A stretch of DNA of 64,000 nucleotides, from assembly GCF_032191835.1 (NCBI RefSeq), contig NW_026799993.1, positions 186,001 through 250,000 on the forward strand, in the 5' to 3' direction. Shown here piece by piece: positions 2,329 through 59,516 of this stretch. Both the position numbers and the translations under genes were made by a program. The stretch's first letter is position 1. Each line of letters starts with the position of its first letter. This DNA comes from Heteronotia binoei (lineage: Eukaryota). A model generated the notes under the pieces. The model was not told where the DNA came from. It was given only the letters and a program-made list of their open reading frames with translations, and ran no database searches.

Positions 2329-2839
2329 TAGGGTTGTCAAGTCCAATCCAAGAAATATCTGGGGACTTTGGGGGTGGAACCAGGAGGGCAGCTAGGAGAC
2401 ATTGGGGGTGGAGCCAGGACCAAGGTTGTGACAAGCATAGCTGAACTCCAAAGGCAGTTCTGGCTGAACGTTTAAAGGGACCACACACACCTTTCCCTCC
2501 ATTGGAAATAATGAAGGATGGGGCATCTTCTTTGGGGGATCATAGAATTAGACCCCCTGGTCCAATCTTTTTGAAACTTGGAGGGTGTTTTGAGGAAAGA
2601 CACCAGATGCTATGGTGCAAATTTGGTGCCTCTACATCAAAACACACCCCCTACAGAGCCCCTGGTAACTGCAGATTACTTCTCCATCATATCCTATGGG
2701 AATCTGTATTCATAGGGAATCATGGAGTGCCCAGCAGACATTTTCCTCCCCCCCCACCCGCTTTCTAATGACCCTTAAGTGGGGGGAGGGCCTCCAAATC
2801 AGGGGATCCCCTGCCCCCACCTGGGGATTGGCAACCCTA
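2329..2839 (+). mobile_element. hAT-type MITE (~510 bp family, TIR TAGGGTTGCCA)
   Basis: TIRs TAGGGTTG/CAACCCTA and a perfect 8-bp TSD TGCCTGGT (2321-2328, 2840-2847). Confidence 0.92.
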
Positions 2840-2954
2840 TGCCTGGTGAAATGAACTTCCCTTGGAGCCTGCAAAACAGAACAGAAAGGCTACTTTGCTT
2901 TATGACAAATGGCATAACCTTTTTAATGTCACTAGAATTGGAACCCCTCAAATA

Positions 2955-3234
2955 ATTGGAACTCCTGGTCCAATCTTTTTGAAACTTGGAGGGTATTTTG
3001 AGGAGAGGCACTGGATGCTATGGTGCAAATTTGGTGCCTCTACCTCAAAACACAGCCCGCCCCCCCAGAGCCCCAGATACACGCAGATCAATTCTCCATT
3101 ATCCCCTATGGGAATCAGTCTCCATTGGGAATAATGGAGTGCCCAGCAGACATTTCCCTCCCCTGCTTTCTGATGACCCTGAAGCAGGGAGAGGGCCTCC
3201 AAAACGGGGGACTCCCTGCCCCCATCTGGGGATT
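2955..3234 (+). mobile_element. Partial copy of the same MITE, ending where a Penelope element is inserted
   Basis: High identity to 2555-2830; stops at ...CCCCATCTGGGGATT. Confidence 0.88.
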
Positions 3235-5345
3235 GAATACAAACCAAGGGAAGTCACTATAATGGATAACACAACAAAAAATACAAGCTAGTGACCAATT
3301 TACTAAGAAATATATAGAAACCAGTCCAATTGTCCAAAACATGCACATTCAAGTCCCAAATTAGTGTGGTGACAAGTCAATCGATTAAGTACTTGTTTCT
3401 TTCCAGTCTTCATCAGATCTGGGACAGCTAACAAAAGAAAATATTATACAAAAATATCAGAAGGGCATTCAGACACCACCAACCCTCTTCCAGTGAAAAA
3501 AATAGCATACTTACATATTGATTCAATTATATAGATTCTTTACATAATTTTTAAAAAAGGGGCACAGAGCATCTCCAACAGCAATTTCACCTCGGCTATA
3601 GCTCAGTATGTGGCTTCTTGTGCACCCTAATGGTGCAACTAACATGTTTAAAAAGGCAAACATCTCATTTACAGCTGCCATTACACAAACCTCTTAAAGG
3701 TAAAGTAACGTATTTCTAATGCAACATGCTAAAAGACACAAACACCACAAACTACATCCACAGCAGATACAACATTCAAAATATCCCATACAAAGAATGT
3801 CAAATCACATAATTTATACAAAAATGTGTTATCACACAGCCAAATTATGCACAGCACTCATAATATTATAAAGACCATTCATAAAAAACGTGTCAAATCA
3901 GTGGTCATATTCAGTCCATATGGAGAAATGCAATTCAACTGGTGTATCCAGTATGCCGCTTTTTGCAGCAGGATCTTGTGCACGTCTTCATTTTCTATCT
4001 GTTTGTTCATATTTGTATAAGGTGAGAAAACAAAAATCTTCACAGTCATGATTCTTTTGCATAAAATGACTGACCATAGGAGCTTCAATCACATGGTTCC
4101 TATGTCTGCTCCTGTGTTCCAGAATACGTACTCTAAGGGCTTGAGTAGTGCTGCCAACATACCTTAGGCCACACCCACAGATGATCAAATACACAACACA
4201 GCGGGTAGCACATGTAGAGTAATGATTTAGAACAAATGGTCTAGTCTTTTCAGCAAAATAATACTCTTTGACATTCATAGATAAATGACAAATTGCACTC
4301 CTTTTACAAGCAAAGTGCCCTTTAAGAGTATGCTTGACCGATTGGTATTCTCTAGATCTTACCAATTTATCCCTAATGGAATAAGTGCGACACAATCCTA
4401 TTTGTGGTGGCATTTCACAACCTCCAATATCACTTACAATGTGCCAATGCTTCCTTACCACATTATAAATTCTGCTAGACAGTCTACTAAATTCTAGTCC
4501 CCATTGTAATCTAGTATTTCTCATCCTGGGATTTTGTTTTAGTAACTGTGTTCTAACTAGATTGGCAGCGCTTTTTCTAGCCATCCTAACATCTTTTTCT
4601 GGATAGCCCCTACCAACAAAATGAGATGCCAACTTATCACTGTCCTCAAGATAATCAGTCATTAGGGTACTATTTCTTCTCAGCCTTATAAACTGGCCAT
4701 ATGGTATATTCTTTTTCAAAGCACGTGGATGAAATGATGAATACTATAAAAAAGCATTCCTATCTGTTGGCTTTCTGTAGGTTTTAGTTGCCAACTTATT
4801 CTCAGTAGTTTTGTACACAACTGTATCTAAAAAAGGTACATCATTAGTGCTTTCCTGGTAAGTAAATTCCACTTTGTCATGCATTGTGTTCATCCAGTTC
4901 ATGAGCTCTGACACATTTTGTGTGGCTTATCACAAAGAAGCAATTATCTATAAATCTGGTGTAAAAATTATCTCTTTCAAAAAAAGATTGCAATTTTCAT
5001 TGAAAAATTTTTCCATCTCAAGTTTGTTCATGAAGAGATTTGCTATGCTAGGGGCACAACTTGACTCCATAGCTACCCAGACACTTGCAAATAAAAAGAA
5101 TTTCTATACTTGAAATAATTCTTATCCAGAATTATGTCTAGCAGTTCCATAAGTAAATATGTAGGGGGCTCTTTCATTTCCTTCAACTCCAAAGTTTCTT
5201 CAACCACCAGCCTTGCATCTTCATGTGGTACAATTGTATAGAGTGATTTTACATCTGCTATGATCAAGACCGCCTCTTCTGGAACGAATAACCCTTCAAT
5301 GTTGTTAATAAACTGAGTTGTGTCTTTAGTGAAAGACTTCATTCT
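3235..5345 (-). mobile_element. Penelope-like retroelement (Neptune-type), 5'-truncated and degenerate: RT + GIY-YIG endonuclease + pLTR
   Basis: ORF 5073-5342 RT (IADVKSLYTIVPHE); ORF 3988-4719 thumb (KNIPYGQFIRLRRN), Cys-rich linker and GIY-YIG (VVYLIICGCGLRYVGST...RILEH). Confidence 0.9.
3353..3425 (-). ncRNA. Type I hammerhead ribozyme motif in Penelope pLTR (copy 1)
   Basis: CUGAUGA (3416-3410), GAAA (3399-3396), helix III ACAAGU/ACUUGU, GUC triplet (3373-3371), distal helix I GUCCC/GGGAC; one mismatch in proximal helix I. Confidence 0.7.
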
Positions 5346-6133
5346 AAGGACATATCAGCTGCACGCATATCTCTAAGGAGATATCAGCTGCACGCATGTA
5401 AGCCTACTGTCTCACAGCAGATCTTCCTGGGTATATTGTGGCACCATAGCTCCAAACTACCTTCAAGCAATAGCAGAAAAGAAGGGAAGTGAGTCATCAC
5501 AGAAAACAATCCTGTATCTATTAGTCCTCTGCAATAATTAACTCCTAGCTGTCAGTGTGGAGGATACTGGGAATGTGGAAAACTAAACTTTAGCAAAGAG
5601 AAGTATTATGTGTTGTAGGTATTAGCATTTCTGCAGTCCAAAAAAAATTAGCGACCATAAAGTCTACAATATAAAGTGGACACAATATGAAAATAATGGA
5701 ATCCAAGCAAATTTGGTGGGAAACCCATAGGACACACTGTATTCAATGTCCTATAGCACTCAGGAAAAGACTGCACAATAGTGCCCTGCTGGGGGGGGGC
5801 ATATTTTTAATGCTCCCCCGTGCAATGTCTACCCTACATAAAAGTTATTTGAATCATATGGACCCTACTTGCAAACATCTTGAAATCACCCACTTATGTT
5901 GGACTTAATAATGTACAATGGCACAAATAAATATGATGAAAATCACAGATTTCTGTCTTAAATGTCTGGATTTCAGGTAAACACCACAGCAACATAGAAG
6001 GAGAGGGGGAGCTTAACCCTTCAAGATCCACAGTGTTCATAGTAATCCAAATACTCCTTTCCCCACTCCACCCTACTAGAATTTTCAAGAGGAAAAGACA
6101 GGGTTCAAAGGGCTGATAGCAGAGGGCTGAAGG

Positions 6134-6311: not shown

Positions 6312-7497
6312 GCTGAAGGGCTGGTTCTGGTTAGTGAACTGTGCAGGTTCAACATGATAAATCCCTTCTCCTTCCCCATATGACTCAGATCTGAATCAGG
6401 GGCTCGGTCTGCCAACTCTGGCTTGGGAAATTTCTCAGGATTTGGTGGTGGTACTGAGGAAGGTGGGGTTTGGGAAAAGTAGGGACCTCAGCAAGGTATA
6501 ATGCCCAGAGGTCATTCTTCGAAGCAGCCATTTTCTCCAAGAGAATGAATATCTAGTGATCAGCTACAATTCTGGGAGATTTCCAGGCTCCCCCCTGGAG
6601 GTTGGCAAACCTACGGCCCTATGCACTACTTGTATGAGGCAATTTAGGCAATTCCTCCCTCCCACTACAGACTCTCCTGTTGCAGCCCACACTGTCTCCA
6701 GTGTTCACTGACACACAGATACATGTCCGCATTTTGGGGACTACAACAAGATGCAGTAGGATGTTTGGGGAGAGGGGAATTTCTACTCATCAAATTTAGG
6801 ACCTGTGATCTGCCAATCCCATCCCAAGAACCTTTTCCCTGGCTTTTTTGGGTGGGGGTACCCTAATCTCTCTTTTGAGGTATCCATCCATACTAGTCCA
6901 TCCAAAATCACCCACAACAGCCATGCAACACTGATCTACCCAAACATAACTGTTTCTTTCATTCTCACAAAGATTTTAGTCAGTTTTCAATGTATTTTCA
7001 AACCTAAAAACTAGTGTAATAACCCAACAGGCAGAAGAGAAGTTGTATGCCGGAGGACACTGTTTAATCCATCCTAAACATGATGCTTCTCCTGAGCATC
7101 TCCCATCTGTTCCCTCCCAGGGGAGTGGGAGTTCAGCTGAGGGGAAAGCAATCTGGGGAGCATCACAGATTAGGGAAGGTTGAGCTCCCCTCCTCTGCTA
7201 GCGACGAATTTCCCCTTGTCCCCGGATCGGTGTAATAAGGCAAAAATAGGATTAGGAACCTGGGGCTCATCTCATCATGCACAGTTTAGCTTTTAGAGGC
7301 TGTGTAGGCGCACACGTACCCAAGCAAGGAGTGGAAATAGCTGATGGAAAACAGAATCTTGGCACCTTCCGAGTTGTTTTTTTTCTCATTTTCCAGATTT
7401 AAGCTCTGAAATATTACACACACGAGTCTGCAGCCTGTGTTTATAAAATGTGCTTACTCCAATTCCTCAGTAACACACCATGAACCATCCAACTTAC

Positions 7498-8011: not shown

Positions 8012-10884
8012 CTCTCGGCTTGGCTTCGCGAACGAAGATTTAAGAAGGGTGCAATAGTCCACGTTTGCTGCAGGCTCGCTGGTGGCTGACAAGACCAATG
8101 TGGGACAGGCAGGTCCGGCCACAGCGGCTGCAGGGAAAAGTCTGATTTAGGGTTGGTCCTGTAGCAGTGCGATTCTTCCTCAATCTTCTTTTGTCCTCAA
8201 GACCAGCTATGCGCGTGTTCTCAAAGGAAGAGACAGCCTGGTGGATGGTGTGCCTCCATGCTTTGCGATCTGAGGCTAGGTCAGACCACTGGTGATGGTT
8301 GATGTGACAGGTGCTAAGGGATTTCTTCAGGGAGTCCTTGTACCTCTTCTTTGGTGCCCCTCTATTTCGATGGCCGGTGGAGAGTTCGCCATACAGGGCA
8401 ATCTTGGGAAGGCGGTGGTTTTCCATCCTAGAAATATGCCCTGCCCAGCGCAGCTGCGTCTTCAACAGCAGTGCCTCGATGCTGGTAACCTCTGCCCGCT
8501 TGAGGACTTCAGTGTTGGTCACAAAGTCACTCCAGTGGATGTTGAGGATGGTGCGAAGGCAGCGCTGATGAAAGCGCTCAAGGAGTCGCAGGTGATGACG
8601 GTATAAAACCCACGATTCGGAGCCATAGATGAGGGTTGTCATCACAACCGCTTTGTAAACATTGATCTTTGTGCCTTTTTTCAGATGCTTGTTGCTCCAC
8701 ACTCTTTTGTGCAGTCGGCCAAATGCACGGTTTGCCTTTGCCAGCCTGTTGTCAATCTCCTTGTCGATCTTGGCATCTGAGGAGATGATGCACCCCAGGT
8801 AGCTGAACTGCTGGACTGTCTTCAGAACTGATTCACCCACAGTGATGCAGGGAGGGTGATAATCTTCCTGGGGTGCAGGCTGGTGGAGAACTTCTGTCTT
8901 CTTCAGACTAACTTCTAGGCCGAATAGCTTGGCAGCCTCTGCAAAGCAGGACGTCATATGCTGCAGAGCTGATACCGAGTGGGAGACGAGTGCAGCATCA
9001 TCAGCAAACAGTAGCTCTCGGATGAGTTTTTCCATTGTCTTGGAGTGTGCCTTTAGTCGCCTCAGGTTGAACAGGCTGCCATCGGTGCGATAGCGGATGT
9101 AGACACCATCGTCCTCATCTAGATCTACTGCGGCTCTTTGAAGCATCATGCTAAAGAAAATCGTAAAGAGAGTTGGCGCGAGAACGCAGCCTTGCTTTAC
9201 ACCTGTGCCTATTGGGAAGGGCTCCGAGAGGTCGTTGCAGTGTCTGACTTGGCCTCGCTGGTCTTCGTGTAGCTGGATGATCATGCTGAGGAACCTTGGG
9301 GGACATCCTAAACGTTCCAAGATTTGCCACAGGCCTTTCCTGCTAACGGTATCGAAAGCTTTGGTAAGGTCGACAAAAGTCACATACAGACCCTTGTTCT
9401 GTTCCCTGCATTTCTCTTGGAGCTGCCTGAGAACAAATACCATGTCGGTGGTGCTCCTGTTAGCTCTGAAGCCGCACTGGCTCTCTGGGAGGAGTTCTTC
9501 TGCAATGGTGGGCACCAGTCTGTTCAGGAGTATTCTGGCAAGGATTTTGCCTGCGATGGAGAGCAGGGTTATCCCCCGGTAGTTGGAGCAGTCTGACTTT
9601 TCCCCTTTGTTCTTGTATAGGGTGATGATGATTGCATCACGAAAGTCCTGTGGTAATTTGCCTTGTTCCCAGCAGGTGACAAGTACTTTGTGAAGTGAGC
9701 TATGTAGTACTGTGCCCCCATGCTTCCAGATCTCTGGTGGAATTCCATCAACTCCTGCTGCCTTGCCACTTTTCAGTTGCTTGATGGCTTTAACAGTCTC
9801 TTCTAGGGTGGGGATCTCATCCAACTCTGTTTTCACCGGTTGAAGTGGGGTGAGGTGGATTGCTGAATCTTGAACTACGCGGTTGGCACTGAAGAGAACC
9901 TGAAAATACTCCGACCACCGGTTCAGTATGGATGCCTTGTCTGTGAGGAGCACTTGGCCGTCTGCACTATGCAAGGGACTCTGAGCCTGATATGATGGAC
10001 CATATACTGCCTTCAGGGCTTCGTAGAACCCTCTTAAATCACCAGTGTCTGCACACAGCTGGGTTCTCTCTGCAAGCTTGGTCCACCACTCGTTCTGAAT
10101 GTCTCGAAGCTTGCGCTGGAGGTTGCTACATGCAGCGCGAAAGGTTGCTTTTTTCCCAGGACAGGAGTGCTGAGCAAGATGTGCTTGGTAGGCAGATCTC
10201 TTTTTTGCCAGTAATTCTTGGATCTCTTGATTGTTCTCATCAAACCAGTCCTTGTTCTTCCTTGTGGAGAACCCGAGGACTTCTTCAGAGATCTGCAGGA
10301 CGGTAGTTTTTAGGTGTTCCCAGAGTGCTTCTGGAGAAGGGTCTGTGGGGCAACTGAGGTCCTCAATTCTTGACTGGAGTTTTGCCTGGAAGGCAGCTTT
10401 AACTTCGGCTGACTGGAGGCTGCCAACCTGAAACTTCCTCCGAGGGATACCTCCTCTCCTGGGTGTGGGTTTAAAGTGAAGACGGAGATTGCAGCGTACA
10501 AGACGATGATCCGTATGACATTCTGCGCTGGGCATTACTCGGGTGTGTAAGACATCTCGAAGGTCTCTCTGGCGCACCAGAATGTAGTCGATAAGGTGCC
10601 AATGCTTGGACCGTGGGTGCATCCAGGTTGTCTTCAGACTGTTCTTCTGCTGGAAGATAGTGTTGGTGATGGTGAGCTGGTGCTCCATGCAGAATTCTAG
10701 CAGGAGGCGCCCGTTGTCATTGCAGTTGCCAATGCCGTGTTTGCCAAGTACTCCTTTCCAGGCTTCCGAGTCTTTACCTACTCTGGCATTGAAGTCGCCA
10801 AGGATGATCACCTTGTCCTCTGTAGGGGTCTTCCGTACGAGGTTGCGTAGATCAGCAATCTGATCTGCAATCTGCTGCTGATCT
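8012..10884 (-). mobile_element. RTE-clade LINE, young, 5'-truncated, uninterrupted ORF (partial AP endonuclease + RT + C-terminal CxxC..H..C)
   Basis: ORF 8040-11291: [19 protein letters not shown] (APE); [37 protein letters not shown] (RT); about 940 codons with no stop; 10-bp TSD ACTACAAAAT (8002-8011, 10885-10894). Confidence 0.95.
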
Positions 10885-11032
10885 ACTACAAAATAAGTAC
10901 AGGGAAAAGGACTGACTAAAACTAGGGAGGGAAAAAAGAGCAACATACAAGGAGAGATTGGCCAGGGTTCAATCTGATCATGCAGGTCTGGTTGGGGAGA
11001 GAAGGGGAGAAATGGTGAGGTTGGGGCTAGAG

Positions 11033-11538
11033 TAGGGTTCCCAATCCCCAGGTGGGAGCAGCGGATCCCCTGGTTTGGATGCCCTCCCCCCACTTCAGGG
11101 TAATCAGAAACTGGGAGAGGGAAGGAAATGTCTGCTGAGCACTCCATTATTCCCAGTGGAGATTGATTCCCATAGGGGATAATGGAGAATTGATCTGTGT
11201 GTATCTGGGGCTCTGGGGGGGGGGCTGTTTTGAGATAGAGGCACCAAATTGCACCATAGCATCCAGTCCCTCTCTCCAAAATACCATCCAAGTTTCAAAA
11301 AGATTGGACAAGGGGTTCCAATTCTATGAGCCCCAAAAGAAAGTGCCCCTATCCTTCATTATTTCCAAGGTGTGTGGTCCCTTTAAATGTGATGACCGGA
11401 ACTCCTTTTGGAGTTCAATTATGTTTGTCACAACCTTGCTCCTGGCTCCACCCCCAATGTCTCCAGGCTCCACCCCAAGACTCCTGGCTCCACCCCCAAA
11501 GTCCCCAAATATTTGTTGAATTGGACCTGACAACCCTA
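11033..11538 (-). mobile_element. hAT-type MITE (TAGGGTTGCCA family)
   Basis: TIRs and perfect 8-bp TSD GGCTAGAG. Confidence 0.92.
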
Positions 11539-33242: not shown

Positions 33243-33750
33243 TAGGGTTGCCAAGTCCAATTCAAGAAATATCTGGGGACTTTGGGGGTGGAGCCAGGCA
33301 CAATATGGGTGGAGCCAAGATCAAGGCTGTGACAAGCATAATTGAACTCCAAAGGGAGTTCTGGCCATCACATTTAAAGGGACAGCACACCTTTTCAATT
33401 CCTTCCTTCCTTAGGAAATAATGAAGGATAGGGGCACCTTCCTTTGGGGCTCATAGAATTGGACCCCCTAGTCCAATCTTTTTGAAACTTGGGGGGCATT
33501 TTGGGGAGAGGCACTAGATGCTATACTGAAAATTTGGTGCATCTACCCCCAAAAACAGCACCCCTAGAGCCCCAGATACCCGCGGATCAATTCTCCATGA
33601 TTTTCTATGGGAATAAATCTCCATAGGGAATAATAGAATTCCCAGAAGACATTTCCTTCCCCTCCCCCCGCTTTCTGACGACCCTGAAGCGGGGGGAGAG
33701 CCTCCAAACCGGGGGGGTCCCCTGCCACCACCTGGGGATTGGCAACCCTA
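33243..33750 (+). mobile_element. hAT-type MITE (TAGGGTTGCCA family)
   Basis: Perfect TIRs and TSD CTTGAAAG. Confidence 0.93.
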
Positions 33751-56496: not shown

Positions 56497-57863
56497 CCTA
56501 AAACAGTACTGGCAGTCTCTTGCCAATGAATGATTATCCCACAATATATGTTGTCTATACTTAAAGCTCCACAAGGCTTTTAGCAATTTGTAAAAACTTA
56601 CATTCCCTGAAGTTCAGACATTTTTTTGTTGAGCTACGTCTACCCATGTTTTTTGCTGTTTTGATTCACTGTGAAGCTGTTATTATGGCTTTCTGTATAA
56701 CCTTAGTCATCCAAACCTAAGGGCTAAATTGTTTGCAGTGCCAAACCCCACCCTTCTCTTCAGCAGCAAGATAAACCCCAAATACCCTGTGGCAACAAAG
56801 TTAGTATCATTGCCCAACATAATTGAGGTATTTGCTGCCAGATAAGCAGTATGTACACACAATTTGGTAATACATGAGGTGTCCCTTGGACTCTTAAATC
56901 ATGTCTGAAGACATATTAGTTGTCACATAATTCAGCTTTTCTTGGTGCAGGATAATTCAGCTTTTCTTGGTTCAGGAAATGGAGATAGAAATGTATGCTG
57001 TAAACAGAGTATACATCACTGACTCTGTACACTCCCCCACTCTATGAGATCTGTGCTGGCAGTGACTGACTAGGAAAGAGATCTTGGGGTTACAGTAGAT
57101 AGCTCAATGATAGCAGCAAATGACAGCTCAATGATAGCAGCAAAAAGGCAAACTCCGTTATTAGGGAAAGGATTGCAAATAGAATAACAGGCACTGCAAT
57201 GCCTTTGTAGAGATCTTTTGGAACACTGCATATAGTTTAGCCCATCTATTTTAAAAAGGATACCATACAGTAGATGAATTTTGTTCTTGTTTGGCTCTAG
57301 GAGCCAACCTTAAGAAATTATAAGTCTAAGTCATATTCAAGTATTAAGGTTTTTTTATTTAATGACCATATTTTCTAATTAGTGCTATCACAAAATCTAT
57401 TCTTAACTTCTTCATAGTGTCTCATAATTTGATTAAAGCTGACTAAAGTGTTACAGTATATAAACAAATATAGGGATAACCTAAAGGAGACCACAAAAAA
57501 CTAACATTTAACTCTAACCTAACCTCCCCAGTTTCTCATAATTACATTGCTGCTTTTAAAAGCTCCATTTTATTAAATATTGCAGCTAGTACAGAAAATA
57601 CCTAAAGATATGAAATCGTCCACCACCACCACCACTAAATGGTGTAAAGTTAAATTTGTATATAAACAATTATAACTTCATGCCCATTTAGTTTTGCATC
57701 ATAAAACAAACGATTCTGGTACAGAATAACAAATATCCTTTGTACTTCATGGTAAATAGCTGCAAGATGCTGTAATAAAATAACAGCTAAAAATAAAAGC
57801 TGCCACAATGAAACTTTTAACACCATGATCATCTGGGGCTTGGGAGTTATCAAGCCCTGTTAA

Positions 57864-58770
57864 TAGGGTTGCCAAGTCCAATTCAAGAAATATCTGCAGA
57901 CTTTGGGGGTGGAGTCAGGAGCAAGGGTGTGACAAGCATGATTGAACTCCGAAGGGAGTTCTGGCTATCACAGTTAAAGGGACCACACACCTTTTTAAAT
58001 GCCTTCCTTCCACAGGAAATAATGAAGGATAGGTGCACCTTCTTTTGGGGCTCATAGAATTGGACCCCCCAGTCCAATCTTTTTGAAACTTGGAGGGTAT
58101 TTTAGGAAGAGGCACTGGATGCTATACTGAAAATTTGGCACATCTAGCTCAAAAAACAGCCCCCCAGAGCCCCAGATACCTGCAGATTCATTCTCCATTA
58201 TTTCCTATGGGAATCAGTCTCCATAGAGAACAACAGAGTGCCCAGCAGACATTTCCCTCCCCTCCCCCTGCTTTCTGATGACCCTGAAACGGGGGGAGGG
58301 CCTCCAAACTGGGGATCCCCTGTCCCCATCTGGGGATTACACAACAAAAAATGCAAGCTAGTGACCAATTTACTAAGAAGTATATAGAAATCAGTCCAAA
58401 TGTCCAAAACATGTATATTCAAGTCCCAAAGTAGTGTGGTGACAAGCCAATCGATTAAGTACTTGTTTCTTTCCAGTCTTCATCAGACCTGGGACCAATA
58501 TTGACTCAATTATATAGATTTTTTACACAATTTTCAAAAAAGAGGGACGCAGAGCGTCTCCAGAAGCAATTTCATATCGGCTACAGCTCAGTATGTGGTT
58601 TCTTGTGAAATTGCTGCTGGAGACGCTCTGCGTCCCTCTTTTTTGAAAATTGTGTAAAGAATCTATACTTCTTAGTAAATTGGTCACTAGCTTGCATTTT
58701 TTGTTGTGTTACCCATTATAGTGACCTCTCTCAGATTGTATTCTGTCCCAACTGGGGATTGGCAACCCTA
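57864..58770 (+). mobile_element. hAT-type MITE carrying an inverted-repeat Penelope pLTR insertion (58339-58743)
   Basis: TIRs intact, TSD CCTGTTAA/TCTGTTAT; insert homologous to 3235-3620 and flanked by duplicated TGTCCC(C)A(T/A)CTGGGGATT. Confidence 0.9.
58423..58496 (-). ncRNA. Type I hammerhead ribozyme motif (copy 2)
   Basis: GGTCCCA-GGT-CTGATGA-AGACTGGAAA-GAAA-CAAG...CTTG-TC-ACC...TGGGACT: core, helix III, GUC triplet and both parts of helix I pair. Confidence 0.78.
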
Positions 58771-59516
58771 TCTGTTATAAAGCAGAAAAGGTTAGTCAAA
58801 ATAATGAAGAGGTTGAAGGACATTCTCTAGAAAGGAAAGGCTAAAAAGTTTGGGACTTTCAGTTTAAAGGAAAGATGATGGGGGGCATGATAGAGGTTTA
58901 TACATTGATGCATGGATCTTGAACATAGTGTTCCTAACAAAATTTAGAGGCAATAGATTCAGGCCAGATAGAAGGGGATTTATTTCACACATTAAGTAAT
59001 TAACTGCTATAATTCAGTGACACAGAATGCAGGGATGGCCATTAATTCAGATCGTTCTAAAAGGAAAACAAGTTCATGAAGGAGAGGTTCATCAGTTGGT
59101 ATTAGCCAAGTGAAACTAGATAAGTGAAAATGAAATGAAATTTCTCTGTTCAGAGACAATAAATCTCTCAATACCTGAGCTGGGAGACTTTGCCTTGCAT
59201 GAAGTCCTTCCAGAACATCTGGCTGGCTGCTGTGTGTAACAAGATGCTAAACTAGATGGACTACTGGGCAAATGCAGCTACACTGCACTTATACTCCAAT
59301 GAAGCTAGCCTACCTGAGTAATTTTTCAGCCTCATCTACCTCTAAGGTTTGTTGTAAGGATAAAAAGAGGGCGGAGACGTGTTGATCTGAGCTTCTTTAA
59401 GGAAGAGTGGGATAAAAATTGAATAAAATTTCTTTTGCATATATACGTATGAGCTTAGACTCACGCTGTGATTTTGCTCTTCACTCACTATATGCAACTG
59501 CCTATCTCTTTTCCAG

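Follow-up and report, generated by a model that had tools for sequence, protein, structure and literature searches.

A Penelope-like element family of the gecko Heteronotia binoei prefers the subterminal end of a hAT-type MITE and probably integrates by nicking both strands at inverted half-sites

We analyzed a stretch of 64,000 nucleotides of the gecko Heteronotia binoei (contig NW_026799993.1, positions 186,001 to 250,000), hereafter called the window, to which all positions below refer. The element at positions 57864-58770 belongs to a family of TIR elements of about 510 bp, with at least six copies in the 64-kb window. The TIR reads TAGGGTTGCCAA and the copies measure around 506-511 bp. 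The 8-bp flanking duplications are perfect in three of five window copies and near-perfect in the other two; those of the copy studied here lie at 57856-57863 and 58771-58778. Because of this TIR, the 8-bp flanking duplications, and the presence of at least six copies in 64 kb, we assign the family to the hAT-type MITEs: it has short TIRs, an 8-bp duplication, and no coding capacity. The subterminal 3' end of the MITE reads CCCCTGCC^CCCAYCTGGGGATT^GGCAACCCTA, with one half-site of the target described below in the TIR and the other 14 bp inward. The 5' TIR has the same TIR half-site, without a partner 14 bp inward. Two perfect targets of the form TGCC-N14-GGCA are unoccupied in the window, one at 2812..2833 on the plus strand, in an intact MITE copy (2329-2839), and the other at 33723-33744. 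Elsewhere in the window, a LINE-type open frame of 1,083 aa on the minus strand (8040-11291) contains endonuclease- and RT-like sequence recognizable by eye. Its mechanical ORF call runs through the adjoining MITE at 11033-11538; since this MITE has its own 8-bp duplication, the two elements are merely neighbours.

The host MITE is interrupted by an insert of 405 bp (58339-58743). The original prediction of a Penelope insertion at this place was correct, in that the insert is real and consists of PLE 3'-end sequence built as an inverted repeat. It is a fold-back product of a Penelope-like element (PLE), with two converging, inverted arms of one sequence and a 34-nt tail. The arms are 96% identical between 58334-58384 and 58664-58714, and 89% identical between 58500-58574 and 58606-58680. 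Read along the plus strand, the host MITE, delimited by BLAST against the other window copies, runs from its 5' TIR to the inner half-site (57864..58324). This half-site, CTGTC (58320..58324), is a variant of the CTGCC seen in the reconstructed empty sites of 41 insertions, and CTGCC is the reverse complement of GGCAG. The sequence suggests that the bottom strand was nicked directly 3' of CTGTC. There follow the left copy of a 14-bp target-site duplication (cccatctggggatt, 58325..58338) and the left arm (58339..58605), an antisense cDNA according to the arm map against the long copy described below. This arm begins at the inner reverse-transcription start ACACAACAAAAAATGC, also found at most 5' junctions of genomic loci, and reaches the usual 5' boundary of the unit. 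The right arm (58606..58743) is in sense orientation, has an internal deletion, and ends in ...GATTGTATTC. Its last 34 nt (58710..58743) are the one-sided tail, present in the right arm only; at most loci the left arms begin with ACACAAC, about 34 nt inward. After the filler tgt (58744..58746) come the right copy of the duplication (cccaactggggatt, 58747..58760) and the MITE 3' TIR end (ggcaacccta, 58761..58770), which starts with the TIR half-site GGCAA (58761-58765). The top strand was probably nicked directly 5' of this GGCAA.

These boundaries correct two details of the original prediction. A duplication of 17-18 bp had been proposed, which needed a 1-nt gap. The target-site duplication is in fact 14 bp (CCCAWCTGGGGATT), and the extra tgt is the variable 3' filler of the element, copied from the element RNA directly beyond GTATTC and outside the target. 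At L002, the duplicate locus on contig C21, the filler is still TAT, its ancestral state; the longer duplication was thus a chance match between filler and target. TAT starts 29 of the 63 3' flanks at unbiased junctions, and across loci the filler between ...GTATTC and the right-hand target copy is absent or reads T, TA, TAT, TATT, or TATTCT. Both boundaries had also been placed 2 nt 3' of TGGGGA. This holds for the right-hand one; on the left, the nick position lies inside TGGG^GA, on the other strand. The symmetry is centred on the outer half-sites CTGTC and GGCAA, and not on the CCCCA..TGGGG palindrome.

A second copy of the family lies on the minus strand at 3236..~5350. It is an older, 5'-truncated copy of autonomous type, broken but longer, and the sequence of the 58339-58743 insert corresponds to its 3' untranslated end. 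Its own 3' end at 3236 (...GGTTTGTATTC) directly abuts, with no filler and in the orientation opposite to the right arm at 58743, the 3' part of another copy of the same MITE (2948..3235, plus strand). This part contains CTGCC at 3217-3221 and cccatctggggatt at 3222-3235, and ends at the same top-strand nick position, its ...ctggggatt adjoining the minus-strand PLE copy at 3235. The claim that this insertion uses the same MITE position is thus upheld to the nucleotide at one junction. The other junction was not found, the sole similar sequence (6595-6613) being part of a different, intact MITE; therefore, the event has no verifiable duplication. That MITE (6395-6613) represents a related family ending in ...CCTGGAGGTTGGCAAACCTA, which has the TIR and the TIR half-site in common with the host MITE; its relatives are PLE targets genome-wide (L016, L038, and L063; in reverse, L025, L073, L079, and L081).

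The last ORF of the long copy (3988-4719, minus strand) matches the Pfam GIY-YIG model with E = 0.0018 and 19 bits, under the 22.6-bit cut-off. The motif YLIICGCGLRYVG, two Cys inside the GIY-YIG core, and downstream His residues can be read directly in this ORF, and its neighbours in the ESM Atlas are animal GIY-YIG/HTH_animal clusters (score 0.96). These lines agree, with weak statistics, on the C-terminal CCHH-type GIY-YIG domain of EN+ PLEs. RT-like motifs were seen by eye only, in broken fragments at 4744-5342 on the minus strand (…DVKSLYTIVPH…, …RFIDN…, …PFLD…), and these fragments had no Pfam match. PLE hallmarks include inverted 5'-truncated copies (PMC8557442) and a 30-40-bp tail (PMC8557442, PMC11167929). 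Fold-back arms are found in the window insert and in approximately 70% of 90 genomic loci, and the tail, at one end only, measures 34 nt. The architecture of the long copy and of the insert is the one described for PLEs (PMC8557442, PMC11167929). A hammerhead ribozyme in the pLTR is common, and not universal, among EN+ PLEs; Rfam searches at E <= 1-10 found none in 58200-58900, 3200-5400, or 58400-58560. A hammerhead-core-like string, CUGAUGA...GAAAC, occurs on the PLE sense strand at 58470-58495 (minus) and also at 3407-3424; no Rfam model matches it. A common 5' boundary, (GCA)CAAGAAGCCACATACTGAGCTGTAGCC, delimits many arms (58590-58606 in the window; also L034, L046, L058, L060, and L076), and an 89-bp segment of the old copy (3426-3514) is absent from young copies. 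These two observations suggest that the template RNA is short, around 300 nt, and is itself a non-autonomous mini-unit whose 5' end is defined.

The original prediction rested on two insertions and proposed an analysis of junctions across the genome, which we carried out. In the 2.63-Gb genome, the exact 3'-terminal 23-mer of the PLE occurs 302 times, and a BLAST search for the PLE 3' end gave 1,346 first-look candidates. We took as an unbiased sample the first 63 junctions, in genome order, of the 302 exact sites, and as a second sample the 30 best BLAST loci (63 + 30 loci in total). In the unbiased sample, 27 of the 63 3' junctions (43%) lie at the subterminal MITE site, a count obtained both by eye and with an objective pattern rule. 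The same rule gives 1-3 out of 63 at control offsets and 1.1% among random 40-mers of the window, and the excess over a random position is about 4,000-fold. By eye, 17 of the MITE-end junctions are forward and 10 reverse, with no orientation bias. The remaining 36 are outside MITEs, at sites that share the motif described below. The same two nick positions recur in the 20 MITE-hosted loci where both junctions were recovered, and the 14 nt that are duplicated do not differ between forward and reverse insertions (CCCAYCTGGGGATT, or the complement). The older subfamily that includes the 3236 copy has the same target at four independent loci. Sequence of the 5'-TIR type was found in none of the sampled PLE flanks. 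The preference of this PLE family for the MITE site is thus real.

Both junctions were recovered in 41 loci, from which we reconstructed the empty sites. The duplicated target is 14 nt across the 41 insertions; automatic boundary calls range from 13 to 16, a spread caused by microhomology. In the empty sites, two half-sites in inverted orientation flank the 14 nt that become duplicated, ...CTGC(C/T)^N14^(A/G)GCAG.... The spacer is 14 in 21 of the 29 well-scoring sites and in 11 of the 20 non-MITE sites. For TGCC/GGCA, the latter reach 5.75 out of 8 and random sites 4.37 (p < 5e-5), a comparison that is partly circular, since the anchor is the best match and the sole control is random sites given equal freedom. 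RGCW occurs 13-21 nt from the junction in 43 of the 63 flanks (10-14 at control offsets), and in 23 of the 36 non-MITE flanks (4-9 at control offsets). Position 5 of the half-site, unused in anchoring, is G in 19 of 30 cases. The motif is degenerate, as 7 of the 41 sites with both junctions score at most 5/10, and about one third of the loci, which are single-arm or long copies, have no clean duplication or no clean second junction. As the MITE carries half-sites in its TIR and 14 bp inward, its subterminal end is used more than any other target, whichever the orientation.

Could these junctions be copies of a single event? One ancestral MITE with its PLE may have been amplified as a composite by hAT transposition or segmental duplication, each copy inheriting the junction, an outcome the original prediction had named as one that would refute it. 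Several forward junctions are indeed alike (TAT+CCCAYCTGGGGATT), and both window loci have a duplicate on contig C21. Yet both insertion orientations are present, and the fillers, the insert lengths (140-1,412 bp), the internal break points, and the MITE's own 8-bp duplications vary between loci. The MITE sequences beside the inserts are only 47-87% identical pairwise (mean 69%), which argues for independent events in the MITE-hosted loci; the PLE termini are about 93% identical. The outer flanks are unrelated, except between the window locus (L001) and its duplicate L002. These diverged hosts, varied structures, and unrelated flanks exclude such an amplification as the source of the pattern, a reading to which we give almost no credence, and they bear out the claim of independent insertion. 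We also considered 3' transduction of the MITE end by the PLE, which is unlikely, as 12 forward loci have an upstream MITE body and the 14-bp duplication; in 11 other forward loci, with long or single-arm copies, a search of 1.5 kb upstream revealed no MITE body, and transduction is possible there. Independent insertions might also have been near-random, with the copies in MITEs surviving better, or with MITE ends breaking and capturing PLE cDNA during repair. Insertions of one transposable element (TE) into another are expected to be neutral, and hAT ends are sites of transposase action and thus a source of breaks. However, survival bias can account neither for a position exact to the nucleotide nor for a duplication that is constantly 14 bp, at 10 and 24 nt inside the end. 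Moreover, the hAT transposase cuts the element boundary and not the subterminal PLE site, and the motif and its spacing are common to non-MITE sites. Near-random insertion is thus very improbable.

A targeting nuclease leaves the question of how much of the MITE share is due to the core motif. There are 85,994 perfect TGCC-N14-GGCA sites genome-wide, of which 33,621 (39%) have the MITE spacer signature, and all eight insertions at perfect sites are in MITEs (0.39^8 = 5e-4). With the 10-position motif and a score of at least 9, 8 of 18 insertion sites are MITE-like, against 4 of 42 background sites (odds ratio 7.6, p = 0.004), and at cores scoring 8/10 the MITE excess is around 180-fold. Since MITE sites are over-used relative to sites with equal cores, the core motif alone is insufficient: it accounts for the MITE share largely, but not fully. 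The over-use of about 8-fold makes it possible that the MITE context adds to the core, through a longer recognition sequence, the G/C-rich palindromic spacer or its structure, or something else. The original prediction had proposed a nuclease preferring either a sequence or a cruciform. If structure directed the insertions, the nuclease would recognize a cruciform or hairpin of the MITE palindrome (GGGGATCCCC / CCCCAnnTGGGG) and not its sequence. In line with this, the hairpin potential of MITE targets exceeds that of random DNA (MFE per nt -0.136 vs -0.047, p = 2e-11), and these targets are the ones over-used at equal core. However, the CCCC/GGGG stem is just 4-5 bp, and the nicks are fixed relative to RGCAG on both strands while their place relative to the CCCCA..TGGGG palindrome shifts from one strand to the other. 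In addition, the 36 of 63 insertions at non-MITE core sites have AT-rich (36% GC), non-palindromic spacers and no hairpin excess over random DNA (p = 0.82). With no excess of folding outside MITEs, a cruciform is rejected as a general requirement. Of the two proposed preferences, the one for sequence stands; direction by structure alone is unlikely, and structure could have an enhancing effect in addition to that of the sequence core. Recognition guided by RNA was also rejected, as local alignments between the PLE and the MITE target score at most 7-7.5, under the shuffled controls (mean 7.9, 95th percentile 10). Tentatively, the nuclease may be a site-specific, dimeric GIY-YIG enzyme of the homing type whose cognate site is the MITE end of about 24-34 bp. 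This site would comprise both half-sites and the G/C-rich palindromic spacer or its structure, and non-MITE insertions would be off-target events that have RGCAG cores only. If so, this would be the first Penelope-like element specialized on another transposon, and its site, a double-nick target both natural and defined, would lend itself to the reconstitution of PLE integration.

Coming back to sequence-directed nicking, the junctions make it very likely that integration of this family proceeds through symmetric nicks in both strands of a bipartite target with an inverted-repeat structure, 5'-CTGCY^N14^RGCAG-3', of which the MITE end is the top target. Each strand would be nicked directly 5' of an RGCAG half-site, leaving 3' overhangs of 14 nt that give rise to the 14-bp duplication. 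Both 3' ends would then prime reverse transcription of the element RNA from two fixed internal starts 34 nt apart. The outer start (GTATTC plus 0-6 nt) would usually serve for one cDNA, the inner start (ACACAAC...) for the other. Once the converging cDNAs were joined, the insert would be a fold-back structure that has the 34-nt tail on one side only. The order of strand nicking and the nuclease dimer are presumptive parts of this model. Priming from both sides is proposed by analogy with PAc, a PLE of Anolis carolinensis that cleaves and extends both DNA strands in vitro, whose two internal RT start sites define the tail, and for which a dimer is predicted (PMC11167929).

In many respects, the gecko family resembles known EN+ PLEs. 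Like Penelope/Poseidon and PAc, it has a C-terminal GIY-YIG domain with two Cys in the core; like EN+ PLEs including PAc, it has inverted, 5'-truncated arms, a one-sided tail (30-40 bp there, 34 nt here), and two fixed internal RT starts with both strands as probable primers. It differs in its target. The insertion biases reported for PLEs are towards AT-rich DNA and microsatellites (PMC8557442, PMC3846280, PMC11167929), and PAc prefers AT-rich sequence and ATT in vitro (PMC11167929). Whereas these targets are AT-rich (ATT for PAc) or (TA)n/(CA)n and the duplications variable, in the gecko family the motif is bipartite, inverted, and contains GC, the duplication is fixed at 14 bp, and a single target, located in another transposon, dominates. 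In the literature searched, we found no PLE with a bipartite inverted, palindromic, or TE-specific target, nor one specialized on a DNA transposon.

The prediction that no such pairing of elements had been described was overstated. Tx1 (Tx1L) non-LTR elements insert into the Tx1d DNA transposons of Xenopus, and Tourist into Tourist is another known case of TE-in-TE targeting (both cited in PMC6719617). Like the gecko PLE, Tx1L is a retroelement that the specificity of its nuclease directs to one position within a family of DNA transposons. It belongs to a different class of retroelements, has an AP-type endonuclease, and uses TPRT primed from a single strand. Tx1L-like behaviour would lead one to expect most copies in the target; in the gecko PLE, only around 43% are there, and many off-target sites have just the core. 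Hence, TE-in-TE targeting is already known, and what is new is a PLE with such a target preference; it refines a known class of elements and adds no new one.

Sequence-directed nicking also sets the integration point of R2 in rDNA and of I-TevI-type GIY-YIG homing endonucleases, and a long, degenerate site of the homing type with tolerated substitutions would explain both the on-target insertions in MITEs and the off-target ones. Those systems target unique or genic sites, and we know of none that is a symmetric two-nick system with a 14-nt stagger. To our knowledge, no other retroelements have an integration mechanism as poorly understood as that of PLEs, and PAc, their sole in vitro system, is without a defined natural target. 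The gecko family offers a compact, testable target made of two inverted RGCAG half-sites 14 bp apart. Its hundreds of natural events provide in vivo evidence that points to cleavage of both strands, a fixed stagger, and priming from two ends. They also reveal a clear TE-in-TE niche for a PLE, which explains the frequent fold-back Penelope fragments in the MITE ends of this genome and matters for repeat annotation.

Other regularities were seen in the sampled loci. Three other repeats are each struck two or three times at one internal position (L030/L034/L043, in a related MITE; L046/L065; L066/L070). In these repeats, GCTG or GCAG comes about 14 nt after the junction, and they are secondary hot spots of the PLE family. 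Four independent insertions with unrelated flanks (L061-L064) lie within 360 kb (G000:C2:193.11-193.47 Mb), possibly a local cluster. Finally, contig C21 carries near-identical copies of the two PLE/MITE loci of the window, about 51 kb apart and in inverted order (L002, G000:C21:165576390-165579489; L096, G000:C21:165627920-165630943). The flanks beyond the MITE in these copies are 100% identical over 100 nt, and the contig of the window looks like a haplotig or a recent segmental duplicate of the C21 region.
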